Shown here: positions 1-8,156 of the stretch, in pieces
How positions within the stretch are numbered: the stretch's first letter is position 1
Layout of the letters: each line of letters opens with the position of its first letter
Source of the DNA: Entomortierella parvispora E1425
Lineage: Eukaryota; Fungi; Mortierellomycota
DNA length: 8,156 bases
Direction: 5' to 3'
NCBI GenBank assembly: GCA_020891255.1
Contig: BQFW01000019.1
Coordinates: 1 to 8,156 of the forward strand
Notes under the pieces: generated by a model
What the model saw: the letters and a program-made list of their open reading frames with translations, nothing else
Database searches by the model: none
What the model was told of the DNA's origin: nothing
Program-made: the position numbers and the translations under genes

Positions 1-261
1 AAAGTGCCCCAAATGCAGAATTTCTTGTCCGTTATAGAGAAATAATATCCTCTAATTTACTCCCAGACCTTGCCTATCTGAGTTTTATAACCGGCTACTT
101 CACTCTCAGCCCTTGCCTAACTGAGTTTTATAACTGGCTAGCTCGATATTATAAATTAATCAAATGTTTTTTAACTTTTTAAACCTTGGCCTTGTTAATG
201 CCTCTAAATTAACTAACTCTTCCTATATTATTAGATCCTTTTCTAATTCTAATTATTCCTT
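1..261 (+). repeat. Left terminal inverted repeat (261 bp visible; probably missing at least 11 terminal nt)
   Basis: Position i pairs with 8146-i from base 1 (AAAGTGCCCC...) to 261. The first mismatch is 262/7884. The repeat includes the ATG at 164 and the first 32 codons of the DNA polymerase ORF. Confidence 0.97.
55..140 (+). repeat. 43-bp imperfect tandem duplication inside the TIR (mirror copy at 8006-8091)
   Basis: 56-97 versus 99-140 match at 37 of 42 nt. The cores are CCTTGCCTATCTGAGTTTTATAACCGGCTA (68-97) and CCTTGCCTAACTGAGTTTTATAACTGGCTA (111-140). Confidence 0.9.
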
Positions 262-3200
262 AAAAAATAAAAAAGAAATTATCACAAAAATTTCTAAATC
301 AGAGGATACTCCTTTTATGGATAAATTCTCTAAATATAAATCTGATTTTAATCAAAAATATATTACTCCTTTAAAATACAAATACACTACTACTTTAAAA
401 TTTTCTCCTTATTTCTGTACTTATGATTTGGAAACATTTAAAAATACTCAAGGTATAGCTACTCCTTATTTATTTGGTATTTATATTCCTAATGTAGGTT
501 TTAAAGCTTTTTATGGATTAGATTGTGTTGAAAAAGCCTTAGAGTTTATCTTTAATTTTGATTACCCTGTTAAAAAAGTCTCTTTCTTCGCCCATTTCGC
601 TGGTGGGTTTGATGTTTATTTAATTATGAAAGATATCATAAAAAGCAAAGGTGCAAATAAAATAGAATATTTAATGGATCCTAGTAATAATATATTTTAT
701 CTTAGTTTCGAACATAATAATCATGTATTTGAATTTAAAGACTCTTATAAATTAATTCCTATTAAATTAGATAGAATCTTAAAAGGTTTTAAAATTATCG
801 TAAATGAATCTTTAGGAAAATTACCTTTTAATCATAATTGGGTGAATGAAAGTACTATTTTTTATAATAATAAAATACCTTCATGGTTAATCTCGCATAA
901 AGAATTATTAGTAAATGCTGGTGTTTTAGATGATAATGAAAATTTTAATTTTCAAAAATATTCTACAATTTACAATGAAATTGATACTATTGGTTTACAC
1001 AAATCTATTGATAAATTCTTTAAAATTTTAGTAGATAATTTTCATATAGATTTTTCTCATTGTATTACTTTACCTCAATTAGTAATGGATTTATTTAGAA
1101 AAAGAAACCTAGATGAGAATATTAAAATTAGAATGTTTAGTAAAAAAATGCAAAATATTATTTCTAAAGCTTACTATGGAGCTCATACTGCTGTTTACAA
1201 ACCTTATGGAGAAAAATTATATTATTATGATATTAATTCTCTTTATCCTGCCTGTATGCTTAAAACAATGCCTATTGGTACACCTAAAAAATTCGATGTG
1301 TCAAAAGGATTAAATAATTTCTTTGGTTTTGCTTTAGTTAAAGTAACTGTGCCTGAATCCTTAAATATACCTGTTTTACCTTTATATGTTAAAATAGAAG
1401 GTTTAGATAGATTAGTATTTCCTACAGGAAGTTTTAAAGGATATTACTTTTCAGAAGAGTTAAAATATGCAGAGTCTTTAGGTTGTAAAATAGAATTAAT
1501 AGAAGCATGGGAATTTCAAAAAGGATATGATGTATTCAAAGATTATATTGAACCTTTATTTGAATTAAAAAGAACAGGGAATAAGGATGAAAGAGATGTA
1601 TTCAAACTTTGTTTAAATACTTTATATGGTAAATGGGGTCAACATAGAGAATATAGACTTAATGTTATAACAGGAGATATGGATCTAATGGAACAAATAG
1701 AAAAAAAATTTACAAATGTTAAACAAATTACATTTAATGAAAATTTAGCTGGTTATTCATTTGATAAAGCACCTAATCCTAATTTATTTGAGGATTCTCC
1801 AGAATTATTTAATGAATTATCTAATCTTTTTGAAAAAGGTCTTGAATCTAGACCTGTAAATATTGCAATAGCTGCAGCTATAACAGCTTATGCTAGAATA
1901 GAAATAGATCATTTTAAACGATTACCGGGTTATGTAGTATATTATTCTGATACAGATTGTGTAATTTTAAATTTACCTTTACCTAAAGAATATTTAGGTG
2001 ATGGTTTAGGTCAAATGAAAAATGAATTATCTGATGATAATTACACCATTGATAAAGATCACGAATACTTTTTAGAAAAAGGTATATTTTTAAGAGATAA
2101 ATTATATAGTATTAAACCTGTAAATGGTAGTCCTATTACTAAATTCTCTGGTTTACATAAAAATTATATTACTAAAGAATTACATGAGACTATAGAAAAT
2201 ATTTATTTAACTTCAGGTAAAAATATAACATTAAATACTGAAATAAGTACTAAAAATATTAATAGTTTTGAAATTAAAAATAATGAAAAAACACAGAAAA
2301 CATTTACATTTAATTATAATAAACGAATTATGATTAGAAACAATGAAGGAACTTGGGTTGATACTAAACCTATCCATATTTCATCTGTTAAAACACAACA
2401 TTTTGATTTAGAACCTATAATAGGACGACAAAATAGAGAAGAAAATTTAAGTAAAAAAGTCTATTTAAGTTATAAAGATGTTAAGATAAATCATTATAAT
2501 GTATTTAATACAGATTATAAAAAATTTGATGGATTTTTATTAGCTTACATAGCACCAATTTATGATAGTAATTATTCAAATAATTTAATTTTAACAGATA
2601 AATTTTTAATTGAAACTGATAACTTGTTTGAAAAAGCTAAAAATATATTATTAGCAAATTTATATACTTTAGCAGAAAAAGCTATAGAAGAAAATATTTT
2701 AGTTGATGGAATAGGTTATTTAATATCCGAAGAATATATTACACCAGAGGGTATTAAAAAAATTAACACTATAAGTTATCTTAATTCATTTAACTCCCTT
2801 AATGAATTAATTAGTATTTATGAACAACATTTAAATGGATTAATTGAGGGTGGACAGGAAAGTGGAAATATGATTGTTTTGAGTGACACTATAGATAAAT
2901 CTAGTTATAATATTAAAACATTATATTTAAGAATACTTATTCCTAAAGATTTGATTAAATCTAATTTAGTTCCAGCTAAATTTTTACAATTAGAATCCGG
3001 TGAAAATAAAATATTATTATTAGAATCAGGTATTACTAATTTTCCACGATTAGAATCAGGTATTACTAATTTTTTACGAATAGAATCAGGAGTAACTAAA
3101 TTTTTACAATTAGAATCCGGTGAAAATAAAATAGAAAATAAAAACAAAAAAATATCTAAAAAACCAAATAAAAAAAATAAAACAATTATTACAAAAGTAG

Positions 3201-4348
3201 TAAAAGCACATTTAAATCCTATTTCTAAAAATCAAATTAGAAAATATTCAACCAATATTTATAAACAACTTGTTCCTTATGAAAATAAAATATTTTTAAA
3301 ACCAATTTTAAATGTTAAAGATAAACTTTTAGCTCCAATAATTTATGATAATATTATTTTATCTGAAATAAATAAAATTCAATTTATTTTAAATAGATTC
3401 CATGATTTAAATTTTGTAAAATTATGGTTAATAAATAAACTTCAAGAAGATAAAATTATAATTAATGCAGAACTTAATGAAAATACAAAAGAATTATTAA
3501 ATATAATTATAAAAATAAATTATGAAAGTATAATTAAAAAAGATAATCTGAAATGTAAATCAATATTTACCTTTAAAAATAACGAATTTATTACAACATT
3601 ACTTAAAAATAAAAAAATAAATAAACTTTATACAGCATGTTATATTATTACTTTTAATAATAAATATTATTATTATATAGGTTCTTCTACAGATTTTATA
3701 ACTAGATTTAATACACATTCCTTAAATATAAAAAATTATAAAAATAATAAAAATAATAAATTGAGTGAATTATTTAAATATTTTTTAGATTCAAAAACAA
3801 AAAATGTAAAATTTAATATAAATATATTGTATTTATCTTTTAATTATTTAACTTTATTTCAAACAGAATATCCTGATTATAAATTAAGTAAAGGAGAATT
3901 TATTTTATTAAATAAAATCTCTGATTTTCTAGTAAAAACTTTAGAAATAAGTTTATTAGAAAAATTTCAACCTAAACTTAACACTTTTAATAAAGTAGCT
4001 TTTAAACATTTCGAATGGAATGATGAATATTTAAATATTTATAGAGAAAATAATAAAAATATAGAATATTTAAAAGCATCAATATATGAAATATATGGTT
4101 TAAGTAGAAATGCACGTATCATAGAAGAGTTAGCTAACTTTTTAAAATTAGAATTTACTAAAAATGAAAGAGAAAAATATTTTAACAAAACAGGTAATCA
4201 TATTTTAATACGTAAAACAACTTTACAAGATATTTGTCAAAGATATAATTTAAATTCTACTGAAGTATTAAATAATCTTAATAGATTCCATTATTATAAT
4301 AATTCTGGATTTTTAAAAAATCCTTTAAAAATTATAAAAATAAAATAA
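164..4348 (+). CDS. dpo: Protein-primed family B DNA polymerase with a long C-terminal extension containing a GIY-YIG endonuclease domain (1394 aa)
   Basis: Motifs: ExoI YDLET (D88), ExoII HFAGGFD (H144), ExoIII YNEID (Y270), YYGA (YxG[G/A]), motif A DINSLYP (D356), motif B KLCLNTLYG (K481), ITAYAR (Tx2[G/A]R), motif C YSDTDC (Y594) and KLY. The plasmid-type C-terminal end YNKR...WVDTKPIHI falls at about aa 739. The frame stays open to TAA at 4346-4348. Confidence 0.95.
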   Translation: MFFNFLNLGLVNASKLTNSSYIIRSFSNSNYSLKNKKEIITKISKSEDTPFMDKFSKYKSDFNQKYITPLKYKYTTTLKFSPYFCTYDLETFKNTQGIATPYLFGIYIPNVGFKAFYGLDCVEKALEFIFNFDYPVKKVSFFAHFAGGFDVYLIMKDIIKSKGANKIEYLMDPSNNIFYLSFEHNNHVFEFKDSYKLIPIKLDRILKGFKIIVNESLGKLPFNHNWVNESTIFYNNKIPSWLISHKELLVNAGVLDDNENFNFQKYSTIYNEIDTIGLHKSIDKFFKILVDNFHIDFSHCITLPQLVMDLFRKRNLDENIKIRMFSKKMQNIISKAYYGAHTAVYKPYGEKLYYYDINSLYPACMLKTMPIGTPKKFDVSKGLNNFFGFALVKVTVPESLNIPVLPLYVKIEGLDRLVFPTGSFKGYYFSEELKYAESLGCKIELIEAWEFQKGYDVFKDYIEPLFELKRTGNKDERDVFKLCLNTLYGKWGQHREYRLNVITGDMDLMEQIEKKFTNVKQITFNENLAGYSFDKAPNPNLFEDSPELFNELSNLFEKGLESRPVNIAIAAAITAYARIEIDHFKRLPGYVVYYSDTDCVILNLPLPKEYLGDGLGQMKNELSDDNYTIDKDHEYFLEKGIFLRDKLYSIKPVNGSPITKFSGLHKNYITKELHETIENIYLTSGKNITLNTEISTKNINSFEIKNNEKTQKTFTFNYNKRIMIRNNEGTWVDTKPIHISSVKTQHFDLEPIIGRQNREENLSKKVYLSYKDVKINHYNVFNTDYKKFDGFLLAYIAPIYDSNYSNNLILTDKFLIETDNLFEKAKNILLANLYTLAEKAIEENILVDGIGYLISEEYITPEGIKKINTISYLNSFNSLNELISIYEQHLNGLIEGGQESGNMIVLSDTIDKSSYNIKTLYLRILIPKDLIKSNLVPAKFLQLESGENKILLLESGITNFPRLESGITNFLRIESGVTKFLQLESGENKIENKNKKISKKPNKKNKTIITKVVKAHLNPISKNQIRKYSTNIYKQLVPYENKIFLKPILNVKDKLLAPIIYDNIILSEINKIQFILNRFHDLNFVKLWLINKLQEDKIIINAELNENTKELLNIIIKINYESIIKKDNLKCKSIFTFKNNEFITTLLKNKKINKLYTACYIITFNNKYYYYIGSSTDFITRFNTHSLNIKNYKNNKNNKLSELFKYFLDSKTKNVKFNINILYLSFNYLTLFQTEYPDYKLSKGEFILLNKISDFLVKTLEISLLEKFQPKLNTFNKVAFKHFEWNDEYLNIYRENNKNIEYLKASIYEIYGLSRNARIIEELANFLKLEFTKNEREKYFNKTGNHILIRKTTLQDICQRYNLNSTEVLNNLNRFHYYNNSGFLKNPLKIIKIK
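2978..3127 (+). repeat. Five in-frame 30-nt tandem repeats encoding 10-aa units with a (L/I)ESG core
   Basis: The units are KFLQLESGEN / KILLLESGIT / NFPRLESGIT / NFLRIESGVT / KFLQLESGEN. TAGAATC(A/C)GG recurs at 2991, 3021, 3051, 3081 and 3111. 2976-3013 is identical to 3096-3133 (38 bp). Confidence 0.97.
3635..3982 (+). other. GIY-YIG endonuclease domain within the dpo ORF (aa 1158-1273)
   Basis: ACY-x10-YIG-SSTDFIT-R-FNT-H has the same spacing as I-TevI GIY-x10-YVG-SAKDFEK-R27-WKR-H31. The downstream LEISLLEKFQPKLN supplies the conserved Glu (3944) and Asn (3980) in an E-x8-P-x2-N pattern like that of organellar GIY-YIG enzymes. Confidence 0.85.
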
Positions 4349-4391
4349 AAAAAATAAATAAAATCCCCCTTTATTATAATAAAATTATTAT

Positions 4392-4463
4392 GGAAGTGTA
4401 ATTTAATTGAAAAATAAAGGAGTTCTTGTTCCTGAAATATGAGTTCAAATCTCATTACTTCCC
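4392..4463 (+). ncRNA. tRNA-like cloverleaf or degenerate tRNA, identity uncertain (canonical numbering gives anticodon TCT)
   Basis: Acceptor stem GGAAGTG/TACTTCC (7 bp, one G-U), T8-A9, D-stem ATTT/AAAT with loop AATTGAA, 5-nt variable loop, and a perfect T-arm ATGAG-TTCAAAT-CTCAT. The anticodon arm is imperfect and the D-loop lacks GG. Confidence 0.72.
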
Positions 4464-4487
4464 TTAATACAAAAGAAAATAATTATT

Positions 4488-4528
4488 GGGTGTTGGGTGT
4501 TGGGGGGAGTGGGGAGTTTTTTAAAAAA
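4488..4528 (+). terminator. G-quadruplex-type G-tract followed by T6 (candidate terminator or 3'-end signal)
   Basis: GGG-TGTT-GGG-TGTT-GGGGGG-AGT-GGGG (4488-4514) fits G3+N1-7 x4 and is followed by AG-TTTTTT-AAAAAA, 4 nt before the convergent rpo stop. The function is inferred. Confidence 0.4.
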
Positions 4529-4532
4529 TTAG

Positions 4533-7500
4533 TTAACTAATTAAATATAAAGCTTTTTGAATATTTTCTTTAAAAACTTTAAATTCACCTGTTTTAGGAA
4601 AATTAGGTAATTCTATTGAATTTCCTTTATCATTTACAATAAATTTACCATTAGTAATCATTTCTTTAGTAATTATTGTGCTTTCATCAATTAATACGTC
4701 ATTATAGAAAACTTTAAAATTTCCTTTTAAATACAGTATAAAAAATTTATGTAAATTTATTAAAAAATCATCATTAGCATAAATTTCACAGAAAGATTCT
4801 CTTACTAATTCGTTTACTAAAGATATATTTTTAACTGTTGTAGCAAAACAATCATGAATTGTATATAAATTATAAATTCCTAAGAATCTTAATTTTTTAA
4901 CTAATAATGAAATAGTAGAAGCATCCATACTATGAATTAAATTAGGCATAAAAGCACTTTCTTGAGAAACTTTATCTATTTTATCTGTAGGAATTACAAT
5001 ATAATATGAAGCTCCTTTAAAAGATCCACTTCTAATTCTTGTTGATTTTTTTCTTGCATAATTTTGATTTATTTCTAATCCAGATGGTGTCATCCATGCA
5101 ACAGGTAAATTAAGAATTGTCATTAAATTAACCATATTTTTAAAGTAATCTACAACTTCTTGTAATTCGGGATGAGTTTCATATAAAGTACTATGAATTA
5201 TATTTGCTAATTTAAATAGATCTTTACCAGATATAAATTTTGTACCATGAATTTTATTTTTAGGTAAATATAAATAAGTATTATCAATATATTTTTTATC
5301 TAAAAATTCTTTAAGATGTTCAACTATTCCATTAATTGTTACATTATAAGGAATTGTCATAATAGAACGTTTAATTATAGAACGATCAATATAAAAATAT
5401 TTTAAATTTACATATAATGGTTCTTTTAAAACTAAATCAGCTATTTTTTCATTAATAAGATCTAAAGCAACAGTATAAAGATCAAAAGGTTTTTCATCTT
5501 CTGTACTAGGTAAAAGATTAACTAATTTAGCTAAATTTTGATTTGCTGACATTATAGAAAGATGTTGTAATCCATTACAAGTAGCATCTAATTGTATAGG
5601 AATATGAGTAGTAACTATATCTGATGTATTAATTTTTTTATATTCTAGACAAAAAGCTAAAAATAATAATGGTTCATCAGCTTTTAACCAAAAATCTTTA
5701 TCAAAATTTATTATATCTTGATGATGAGATTTAATCCAATCCACACGATCTTTAAATGATAATTTACTTAAATCAGATTTAAAAGGATAATGGCCAAATT
5801 TATTATTATCTAAATTTTTAGCACCTTTTCCGAAACAATTAGCTCCATAAACATTTAACCAATAAAGAGAATTTCTAACATTTTTTATTTCTGGTAAATT
5901 TTGTTCGGGTATTTCCCCAAAACTAATATCTAAATTATTAACACTGTTATAAACTTTCATATCTAATTTATCTCCATTAGCAAATAAAATTAATGCTTTA
6001 GCTAATGAAAGACTCTGATAATGTAAATATGATGTATTACTATAAATTCTACCTCTCCAATCAAAAAATAAAGGAAAATAAATTTTTTCTACATCTCTAA
6101 ATAATTGAGCTATTCCTAAGATATTTTTTTCTTGAAAATATCTTGAATTATGAGATTTAACTTGCTCTCTTTCAAAAGAATCTAATTCATCTATAACATT
6201 AGTTTTTTCATGTAAAGAACCTAATATTAATTTATATTCTACACCTTTCTCTAATATAAAATCTAAAACTTCCGTATTAATTTTAAAAGGAATTTCACTC
6301 ATATAATTAATTTGACCATAAATCATATTTTTATCTTTAATTACTGTAGGATTAATATTATTAACTCCTTGATGAATAATATCGTCAAAATGGTAATTAT
6401 TATTTAATAAATAACCTCCATCATTCTCATCACTCCAAGAAGTAGGTTTACAAATCATAGGTAATTTATAACCTATAATATCGAAACTTTTTTCGAAAAG
6501 TCTTAAAGTAGTATCGCTTACTTTAATAATAATTTCCTCTCTTTTCGTATTTTCTATAGGTAAGGTATCAAATTCTAATAAAGAACCCATATTAACTAGC
6601 TCATGTAATAAATATTCACCTATATTTCCTTTATGAATAGAAGAAATATTTAAGCTAATTTTAAAATCTTTAAAACTTTCTCTATTTTCTTTATAAATCA
6701 CATTTTTTTTATTTTTATTTGAAATTATATATTTTTCATCATATTTTTCTAATGCCCAACTATGGAATATACTATCACCTATTTTCATTAAAAGATCAGA
6801 TTTAGTAATACGATTATTATCACTTAATAAAGGTATAACTTCGTTAAAAACTATAGCAGAAATTTGTGTTTTATTTAATTCAAATAAGGGTTTAAAACTA
6901 AATTTAAAATCGGGTTTTTTATTTCTATTTTGTTTTTTAGAAATATCTTTACGTAAATCATGAATATAATCTTCAAATTCTTTTACATGTTTGTGTAAAA
7001 ATTTAAAGCTTTCAGATGTAGCAACACCATCAATAGGAATATTATCCATTTTATGGTGAATAATATCTGTCCATGTAGAATATAAAAATTTTTCTATTTC
7101 TAATTGAATTTCAGTATTAGATTTATTTTTATTTAAATCATTTAATTTTTCTTTAACAACGTTAAAAACAGGACTATAATCGAAATAAATAGTTTGTTTA
7201 GAAAAACTATCTCCCTCTGAAGAAGTAGGGTTTGAATAAGTAGAATAATTTCTTTTTCCGATATCAGATATATTTTTTAAGGGGGATTTATTACTCTCAT
7301 TACTAGCTTTTAAAAGTAAGTCATTAACTTTGTCTTGAATTCCTGAATTACCTTTAATTAATAATTTATTATTATTATGATAAGCATTATTTGAAAATTC
7401 AAAAGGAATACTAAGAAAATCTAGAACAAAATTTAATTTACGAGCTGAAGGAGATATAATATGTCTTTTAGATGATAATCCTCCAGAAACATAAAATCTA

Positions 7501-7982
7501 TTAATTTGTAATTGATTATAAATTACATCCCAAGGATAATCAACAGAGATAAAACAAGATGTTTCTAAAACATGAGTAAATTCTTCAGGAGAATTTTCTC
7601 TCATTTCAACTAATAAGCTAATTAATTTTTCTAAAGTTAAAATAGATAAAAATTTTTTATTAGGAAGAGTGTCAAGACTAAATTCTTGATTTTCAAATAA
7701 AAAGAAACAACCGTTAATATTAGCTGAGGAATTAAATAAGTATTCTAATTTATCTTGTTTAGGGATATCAGGAATACAAGAAATAGAAGTAAATAAATTT
7801 GTAAATTTATTTGTTCTAACACTAATATTAAAAAGGAAAATAATGAAATCTTTATCATAATCAATAAAAGGTAAAACAGGGGAAAAGGAATAATTAGAAT
7901 TAGAAAAGGATCTAATAATATAGGAAGAGTTAGTTAATTTAGAGGCATTAACAAGGCCAAGGTTTAAAAAGTTAAAAAACAT
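4533..7982 (-). CDS. rpo: Single-subunit (T3/T7-like) DNA-directed RNA polymerase, linear-plasmid type (1149 aa)
   Basis: Motifs: FDWRGRIY (D641), motif A LDATCNGLQH (D799), motif B RSIIKRSIMTIPYN (R-x3-K-x7-Y), PNLIHSMDA and motif C IHDCF (H1043). The stop is TAA at 4535-4533. Confidence 0.96.
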   Translation of the reverse strand: MFFNFLNLGLVNASKLTNSSYIIRSFSNSNYSFSPVLPFIDYDKDFIIFLFNISVRTNKFTNLFTSISCIPDIPKQDKLEYLFNSSANINGCFFLFENQEFSLDTLPNKKFLSILTLEKLISLLVEMRENSPEEFTHVLETSCFISVDYPWDVIYNQLQINRFYVSGGLSSKRHIISPSARKLNFVLDFLSIPFEFSNNAYHNNNKLLIKGNSGIQDKVNDLLLKASNESNKSPLKNISDIGKRNYSTYSNPTSSEGDSFSKQTIYFDYSPVFNVVKEKLNDLNKNKSNTEIQLEIEKFLYSTWTDIIHHKMDNIPIDGVATSESFKFLHKHVKEFEDYIHDLRKDISKKQNRNKKPDFKFSFKPLFELNKTQISAIVFNEVIPLLSDNNRITKSDLLMKIGDSIFHSWALEKYDEKYIISNKNKKNVIYKENRESFKDFKISLNISSIHKGNIGEYLLHELVNMGSLLEFDTLPIENTKREEIIIKVSDTTLRLFEKSFDIIGYKLPMICKPTSWSDENDGGYLLNNNYHFDDIIHQGVNNINPTVIKDKNMIYGQINYMSEIPFKINTEVLDFILEKGVEYKLILGSLHEKTNVIDELDSFEREQVKSHNSRYFQEKNILGIAQLFRDVEKIYFPLFFDWRGRIYSNTSYLHYQSLSLAKALILFANGDKLDMKVYNSVNNLDISFGEIPEQNLPEIKNVRNSLYWLNVYGANCFGKGAKNLDNNKFGHYPFKSDLSKLSFKDRVDWIKSHHQDIINFDKDFWLKADEPLLFLAFCLEYKKINTSDIVTTHIPIQLDATCNGLQHLSIMSANQNLAKLVNLLPSTEDEKPFDLYTVALDLINEKIADLVLKEPLYVNLKYFYIDRSIIKRSIMTIPYNVTINGIVEHLKEFLDKKYIDNTYLYLPKNKIHGTKFISGKDLFKLANIIHSTLYETHPELQEVVDYFKNMVNLMTILNLPVAWMTPSGLEINQNYARKKSTRIRSGSFKGASYYIVIPTDKIDKVSQESAFMPNLIHSMDASTISLLVKKLRFLGIYNLYTIHDCFATTVKNISLVNELVRESFCEIYANDDFLINLHKFFILYLKGNFKVFYNDVLIDESTIITKEMITNGKFIVNDKGNSIELPNFPKTGEFKVFKENIQKALYLIS

Positions 7983-8156
7983 TTGATTAATTTATAATAT
8001 CGAGCTAGCCAGTTATAAAACTCAGTTAGGCAAGGGCTGAGAGTGAAGTAGCCGGTTATAAAACTCAGATAGGCAAGGTCTGGGAGTAAATTAGAGGATA
8101 TTATTTCTCTATAACGGACAAGAAATTCTGCATTTGGGGCACTTTAACTAATATCA
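7885..8156 (-). repeat. Right terminal inverted repeat (7885-8145 mirrors 1-261, plus 11 extra distal nt)
   Basis: 7885-8145 is the reverse complement of 1-261. 8146-8156 (AACTAATATCA) has no partner on the left. The repeat contains the RNAP start at 7982. Confidence 0.96.

Follow-up and report, generated by a model that had tools for sequence, protein, structure and literature searches.

A C-terminal little-finger-fold domain as candidate terminal protein on the DNA polymerase of a linear plasmid from Entomortierella parvispora

The protein-primed family B DNA polymerases (PolBs) of polintons, virophages, adenoviruses and of cytoplasmic and mitochondrial plasmids were modelled by Krupovic et al. 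(2024) (PMC11071308). Every eukaryotic protein-primed PolB was reported to have an extended N-terminal region, whereas adenoviruses encode the primer, the terminal protein (TP), separately (PMC11071308). D1, the N-terminal domain of these PolBs, has four strands in a sheet along with two helices, a fold that also occurs in the TPs of PRD1 and adenovirus; its best structural matches are little-finger/PAD domains (PMC11071308). The mapped linking residues, Tyr190 of PRD1 and Ser580 of adenovirus, lie in the unstructured loop between helix α2 and strand β4 with a Gly or Pro nearby, and a Gly at position +1 of the linking residue is conserved in adenoviruses (PMC11071308). Here we describe a plasmid polymerase of a different layout, encoded in a stretch of 8156 nt from Entomortierella parvispora E1425 (contig BQFW01000019.1, positions 1–8156; hereafter the window), in which the primer may sit opposite to every described case, behind the polymerase core.

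The window is a linear plasmid, complete or almost so, with two convergent genes. It fits a mitochondrial linear plasmid (invertron), having terminal inverted repeats (TIRs), a DNA_pol_B_2 polymerase with Exo I–III and motifs A–C, and a T7-like single-subunit RNA polymerase (RNAP). The two-gene plasmids of fungi and plants (kalilo, maranhar, pAL2-1, pClK1, pMLP1 and the Brassica 11.6-kb plasmid) share with it the TIRs, a protein-primed PolB gene and a T7-like RNAP gene that converge from starts within the TIRs, the AT-richness and the strain-specific presence. The window plasmid differs from these in that ExoI is located at aa 88 instead of aa 200–400, the polymerase bears a C-terminal tail with a little-finger fold, the RNAP is ∼200–350 aa longer at its N-terminus, and the polymerase ORF includes an in-frame GIY-YIG endonuclease. 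In the literature searched, neither a C-terminal TP nor such a plasmid from Mortierella-like fungi was described.

Short N-terminus and conserved tail of the polymerase

The polymerase open reading frame (ORF; 164..4348, + strand, 1394 aa; Pfam DNA_pol_B_2, E = 7.7e-66) contains an exonuclease and polymerase core at aa 88–735 (425..2368, +), followed by C-terminal additions. ExoI reads TYD88LE, motif A carries D356 and motif C reads YSD596TD598. Reading of the ORF and comparison of the TIRs agreed with the original prediction that the ExoI Asp is aa 88 and that 32 of the residues ahead of it (aa 1–32; 164..259, +) are encoded by the TIR. Because only 424 nt precede the D88 codon, there is no space ahead of it for a domain of at least 200 aa, and an N-terminal TP of the usual size is impossible; aa 1–54 differ in length among relatives and evolve neutrally, with a ratio of nonsynonymous to synonymous substitution rates (dN/dS) of ∼0.95. 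The predicted lack of room for an N-terminal TP was thereby borne out. The following segment, aa 55–87 (326..424, +), is conserved, with invariant columns and dN/dS of 0.07–0.43, and is colinear in alignment with the residues that directly precede ExoI in other plasmid polymerases.

The primer could be a hydroxyl residue within aa 1–87 of the whole polymerase, or could be supplied in trans by a co-resident element. The N-terminal peptide is rich in Ser, Thr and Tyr, and for certain mitochondrial plasmids the protein found on the DNA matches the entire polymerase in mass (PMC11071308). However, the neutrality and variable length of aa 1–54 argue against a primer there, and Y58 is not kept in the sister subclade. 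As for a primer in trans, L002, the minimal relative, encodes just these two proteins: a polymerase of 951 aa that stops right after the tail, and an RNAP. Nor is a dedicated host helper expected, given that other strains under this species label lack the plasmid. This explanation was therefore regarded as very improbable.

At the other end, the polymerase is longer than its counterparts. Among 62 homologues, most plasmid PolBs outside the clade of the window polymerase have ExoI at aa 200–290 and stop 0–38 aa past the equivalent of window residue 736, and a few bear unrelated C-terminal tails of ∼100–190 aa. Because the other plasmid PolBs end at ∼aa 736–747 in the numbering of the window polymerase, the residues from ∼aa 740 on are extra. 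The stretch aa 740–938 had been predicted to be an orphan domain of ∼200 aa, non-repetitive and acidic. It is indeed non-repetitive, conserved and acidic, with an isoelectric point (pI) of 4.5 compared with values above 9 in the neighbouring parts, and the tail had no sequence match in Pfam or in a PDB profile search. Its predicted fold, however, could be recognized as that of a little finger/PAD, as described below, and the predicted limits had to be redrawn: the extra region comprises a linker of 44–48 aa and a globular domain of ∼147 aa (aa 784–930; 2513..2953, +), and the ORF runs on past aa 938. A weak Phage_endo_I Pfam match (E = 0.04, 14 bits against a cut-off of 29 bits) was dismissed as noise.

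The linker between thumb and tail (aa 736–783; 2369..2512, +) is predicted to be disordered, yet its sequence is conserved (dN/dS of 0.15–0.55). The dN/dS of aa 780–930 was 0.10–0.38, comparable to that of the core (0.12–0.23), indicating that purifying selection acts on the tail as it does on the core. The tail is acidic in 13 of 13 homologues, with a net charge of −1 to −10 and a pI of 4.5–6.3, these values describing overall charge. Acidity was considered as a hallmark of TPs and dropped as an argument for priming, since other plasmids have N-terminal TP regions that span acidic to basic; it counts here solely against DNA binding.

A word search with residues 700–1150 found five relatives, and in their alignment conservation was unbroken to ∼aa 940 in all of them. 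P0002 (951 aa) stops exactly at this point, P0004 and P0005 stop shortly beyond it, and P0003 adds an unrelated tail. An exhaustive HMMER search with residues 721–960 gave 12 matches (E ≤1e-3) in 1.84 billion representatives, all of which were PolB tails or fragments of PolB tails; by local phmmer, the tail was also found C-terminally in P0006, P0007, P0014 and P0015. Two scans of JGI metagenome contigs with tail alignments found no relative. In every homologue the tail follows the thumb.

In a maximum-likelihood tree of 52 near-complete PolB cores, the tail-bearing polymerases grouped in a single 13-row clade (SH-aLRT 100, stem length 0.89). The tail is present in every complete member of this clade; the gene calls of the members without it are truncated or frameshifted, and their contigs resemble decayed insertions. 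The contigs L009–L012 of the sister subclade are arrays of polymerase fragments, in which no RNAP and no tail was detectable. In L010 and L012 these arrays are head-to-tail, like decayed plasmid insertions in mitochondrial DNA. The tail is thus a conserved, selected and clade-restricted part of the polymerase, in a clade without room for an N-terminal TP.

Predicted fold of the tail and a candidate linking serine

The tail was modelled by AlphaFold2 from an alignment of 19 sequences, with a mean predicted local distance difference test score (pLDDT) of 75 and a predicted template modelling score (pTM) of 0.73. Residues 736–770 were disordered in the model (pLDDT of 34–38 for model residues 1–34), and the core was confident, with means of 69–96 over blocks of 10 residues. 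The modelled topology is βαββαβ, a four-stranded sheet with two helices: β1 (aa 792–798), α1 (aa 821–842), β2 (aa 851–859), β3 (aa 865–875), α2 (aa 879–895) and β4 (aa 914–925). The loop between α2 and β4 (aa 896–913; 2849..2902, +) is 18 aa long and contains S900-G901 at a place of low pLDDT (aa 897–901, model residues 162–166).

Three independent fold searches, which had no ranking step in common, returned almost only little-finger/PAD domains of Y-family polymerases. Among the matches listed by Foldseek against the PDB, 50 of 50 were Y-family proteins (best E = 3e-3, probability up to 1.00). Among those listed by the shape search of the ESM Atlas, all 10 were Y-family clusters, nine of them with IMS_C, the Pfam name for the little finger. 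The best structural matches of the tail are those of D1, and its predicted four strands and two helices correspond to those of D1 and of the PRD1 and adenovirus TPs.

The loop pointed in the same direction. S900 (codon 2861–2863) is kept in 16 of 17 homologues and G901 in 15 of 17, the sole exception for S900 being a degenerate fragment joined to a LAGLIDADG piece. No other conserved hydroxyl residue falls in a flexible loop; the remaining conserved Tyr, Thr and Ser are placed in strands or helices. A Ser adjoining a Gly in an unstructured α2–β4 loop is the arrangement seen around the linking residues of the known TPs, which makes S900 the candidate nucleotide-linking residue. As in the D1 systems, the domain is joined by a flexible tether to a protein-primed PolB of an element with TIRs. 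The tail differs from D1 in lying C-terminal of the thumb and not N-terminal of the exonuclease, and in two plasmids it is internal, with a homing endonuclease after it. It has no detectable sequence similarity to D1 or to the PRD1 and adenovirus TPs, and no vOTU or DX domain. On its modelled fold and loop signature, the tail may be classed as a variant TP–polymerase fusion that lacks the N-terminal or separate placement typical of TPs.

Nevertheless, the nearest structures are little fingers (Pol IV, Dpo4, pol kappa, eta, iota and Rev1), which are likewise C-terminal to the catalytic core and tethered by a flexible linker. The tail could hence be a little-finger-like accessory domain that holds DNA or docks the RNAP, a membrane or the parental TP, the primer being elsewhere. 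The conserved sequence of the linker, as expected for a docking segment, and the lack of a significantly scoring viral TP are consistent with this. On the other hand, little fingers touch the DNA backbone, whereas the tail is acidic overall in all homologues, which appears to fit poorly with a DNA-contacting little finger. The long flexible loop with its near-invariant Ser-Gly would be left unexplained; it also sets the tail apart from the Y-family little finger, the loop of Dpo4 being just a few residues long. The clade would also be left without an identified primer. Taken together, an accessory role was considered rather unlikely. The tail itself is not classed as a Y-family little finger, since it is joined to a family B core (DNA_pol_B_2) and IMS_C (PF11799) gave no match at E ≤1 for any of the 19 tail sequences. 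What the model gives is a predicted fold that matches Y-family little fingers, with a conserved Ser-Gly in the equivalent loop.

With the phi29 TP, the tail would share an acidic domain thought to fill the duplex channel and a priming Ser in a loop, the latter a candidate in the tail. The phi29 TP is elongated, all-helical and separately encoded, whereas the tail model is α/β, and no phi29 TP chain was among the fold matches listed.

C-terminal priming weighed against the RNA polymerase extension

We infer, with the chances judged about even, that aa 784–930 is the TP of the plasmid, placed C-terminal to the polymerase rather than N-terminal. The fuller proposal, that a TP moved to the C-terminus or newly evolved there to give the order Exo–Pol–linker–TP with Ser900 as the linking residue, was rated a little below even. 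The predicted C-terminal primer is thus supported in part, by a selected domain that starts where other PolBs end, with a predicted TP fold and a Ser-Gly loop; priming of DNA synthesis by the tail, with Ser900 as the link, is its candidate role, and the fold is also that of a Y-family accessory domain.

In such a scheme, the flexible linker of ∼48 aa would tether the tail to the end of the thumb. According to the passage on the phi29 polymerase–TP structure in the 2024 survey, the C-terminus of the thumb in a phi29-type polymerase borders the exit channel of the product duplex (PMC11071308). The acidic domain would enter this channel beside the thumb of its own polymerase or of another polymerase molecule, and would present the flexible α2–β4 loop to the active site, where Ser900 would be offered to the catalytic aspartates. 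Its hydroxyl would take the first deoxynucleoside monophosphate, and synthesis would proceed from the TIR end, probably with an adenovirus-like jump-back on a reiterated GAT terminus.

The other place in which the plasmid could keep a primer is its RNAP (4533..7982, −, 1149 aa; Pfam RNA_pol, E = 4.4e-70, aa 704–1148). The RNAPs of the clade are 1149–1150 aa long; those of ordinary plasmids measure 791 aa and at least 813 aa. The N-terminal extension (aa 33–242; 7257..7886, −) is an α/β region specific to the clade and moderately conserved, with the invariant islands GG-LS-x-KRH and KRxYST. The latter reads KRNYST in the window (aa 243–248; 7239..7256, −) and lies in a variable linker. The primer could be this extension (aa ∼33–242), possibly cleaved at KRNY|ST, which would leave a canonical RNAP of ∼900 aa and free a piece of ∼25 kDa, a typical TP size.

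A motif of this kind recurs in plasmid PolBs. R-x-[FY]-[SA]-[STN] was found to be ∼9-fold enriched upstream of ExoI (15 in 10 951 aa, compared with 5 in 33 468 aa elsewhere), usually 47–70 residues ahead of it, in N-termini that include those of P0018, P0021, P0025, P0028 and P0035. In the TIR-encoded peptide of the window it reads RSF|SN (aa 24–28; 233–247, +) and stands 64 residues ahead of ExoI, and no motif of the R-x-[YF]|S type was seen in the linker of the polymerase. We take the motif to resemble the R-3 site of the mitochondrial processing peptidase; as a candidate, it could be a cleavage site that frees TPs. The order of domain, disordered linker, [KR]x[YF]S[ST] and enzyme in the RNAP mirrors that of other plasmid PolB N-termini, where these plasmids keep their TP, and the extension is a live rival.

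Several results speak against this reading. The AlphaFold2 model of the extension, made from four sequences, was poor (pLDDT of 45); a VIA fold search with this model gave no little-finger match, and the ESM Atlas features nothing. When the extension was compared by hhalign with the tail and with other N-termini, only the KRxYST motif aligned, at a non-significant E of 0.078, the best counterpart of KRNYST being KRSYST in other plasmid polymerase N-termini; outside these 6 aa there was no profile similarity to known TP regions. Moreover, a primer in the RNAP would leave unexplained why the polymerase gained and retains a domain with a TP fold. The extension, which the original prediction had named as an alternative, is thus clade-specific and carries the KRxYST island, but it has neither profile similarity nor a confident model to support it, and we consider it distinctly unlikely to be the primer. 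If it were, this would be just as unprecedented.

Returning to the C-terminal domain as primer, the following observations weigh against it. The ∼230 extra N-terminal residues of the RNAP are clade-restricted as the tail is, a word search with them having given one relative, and the KRxYST island behind them resembles islands that other plasmid polymerases have after their N-terminal TP region. P0005 has an extra N-terminal stretch of ∼310 aa, in which neither resemblance to known TP regions nor explanatory repeats were found, and the N-termini in the sister subclade are 130–230 aa long, mostly helical or hydrophobic. The little-finger/PAD is natively an accessory DNA-binding domain and not a primer. 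Structure prediction did give the tail the fold of the PRD1 and adenovirus TPs, but a Foldseek search of BFVD gave no significant viral TP (best E = 7e-3); among its weak rows were an adenovirus TP (E = 0.21) and three protein-primed PolBs, of adintovirus, MELD and bidna-like type (E = 0.016–0.14), groups known to carry D1, with the target ranges unreported. The profile–profile comparison that had been proposed, made by hhalign, revealed no similarity between the tail and the N-terminal regions of two further groups of plasmid PolBs. This is unhelpful but expected, because TPs are known to lack sequence similarity. The case for a C-terminal TP is built on structure prediction and sequence, which make the domain a candidate primer.

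If the domain does prime, it would be the first natural example of a replicative protein-primed polymerase with a little-finger/PAD fold tethered at its C-terminus. It would break the rule of the 2024 survey that the primer domain is N-terminal or separately encoded, and would show that the order of the fusion is not constrained by the mechanism of priming. PRD1-type TPs have been proposed to derive from Y-family polymerases. The layout of core, linker and little finger would mirror that of the Y-family, so that a proposed ancestral arrangement would have been preserved or re-created. With one polypeptide and one candidate serine, the plasmid would offer a compact system for testing the access of a tethered primer to the active site, as well as the descent of TPs from little-finger domains. 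Orthogonal replication systems built from TP–PolB plasmids could use the alternative architecture.

Endonuclease module, cargo and plasmid ends

Behind the tail, a 30/60-nt tandem repeat (2976..3133, +) encodes about five decapeptides (10 aa) of the form LESGxxxFxx in the spacer between tail domain and endonuclease module, and is expanded only in this plasmid. It is followed by a Lys-rich spacer and then by an in-frame GIY-YIG homing-endonuclease module (aa ∼1085–1394; 3416..4345, +), for which Pfam gave a match at aa 1158–1201 with 22.3 bits against a cut-off of 22.6. The module is absent from P0002, P0004 and P0005, and of the relatives only P0001 continues into one as the window does. In L001, a homologue of 314 aa is free-standing on the opposite strand (3180–4124, −). 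Because it is free-standing in L001 and missing from three relatives, the module is seen as a mobile endonuclease gene that was fused in frame in the window and in L003, a relative with 94% identity. In a metagenomic fragment, P0066 (229 aa), a LAGLIDADG-like N-terminal piece precedes the final third of the tail and the Ser-Gly is lost, a sign that homing endonucleases of a second type may invade this gene.

Besides the PolB and the RNAP, no ORF of at least 60 aa was found in the window except two nested ones of 66 and 80 aa. The prediction that the element has no third substantial ORF was accurate in this respect, but it had overlooked the in-frame GIY-YIG module. Some relatives carry cargo between the two polymerase genes: L003 has an RNase III ORF of 308 aa (4560–5486, −), and L001 has ORFs of 119 and 137 aa without Pfam match (4526–5331, −).

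The plasmid was present at high contig depth in runs of the source strain, and was not found in runs of other strains carrying the same species label. None of the public RNA runs contained it, the positives being contigs of the source strain only. The A+T content is 77%, and 75–86% along the plasmid. Together with the high contig depth, the strain restriction and a reiterated GAT terminus, the A+T-richness is an indirect sign of a putative mitochondrial location and of putative protein-bound 5′ ends.

The left TIR (1..261) and the right TIR (7885..8145) have arms of 261 nt with 100% complementarity. Both ORFs begin within them, and the first 32 residues of the polymerase and the RNAP are identical. 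At the left edge at least 11–13 nt of the plasmid end are missing, since the right end and L003 are both longer, and one contig extends 13 nt beyond position 1. The terminus is (GAT)n-like: the right end of the window (8146–8156) reads TGATAT, and L003 begins (1–17) with GATGATGATAT, a reiterated trinucleotide. This resembles the adenovirus terminus CATCATCAAT, likewise a reiterated trinucleotide, which serves jump-back priming. Each TIR also contains a unit of 43 nt twice (52–140 and 8006–8094; 86% identity), which a replication or transcription protein could bind.

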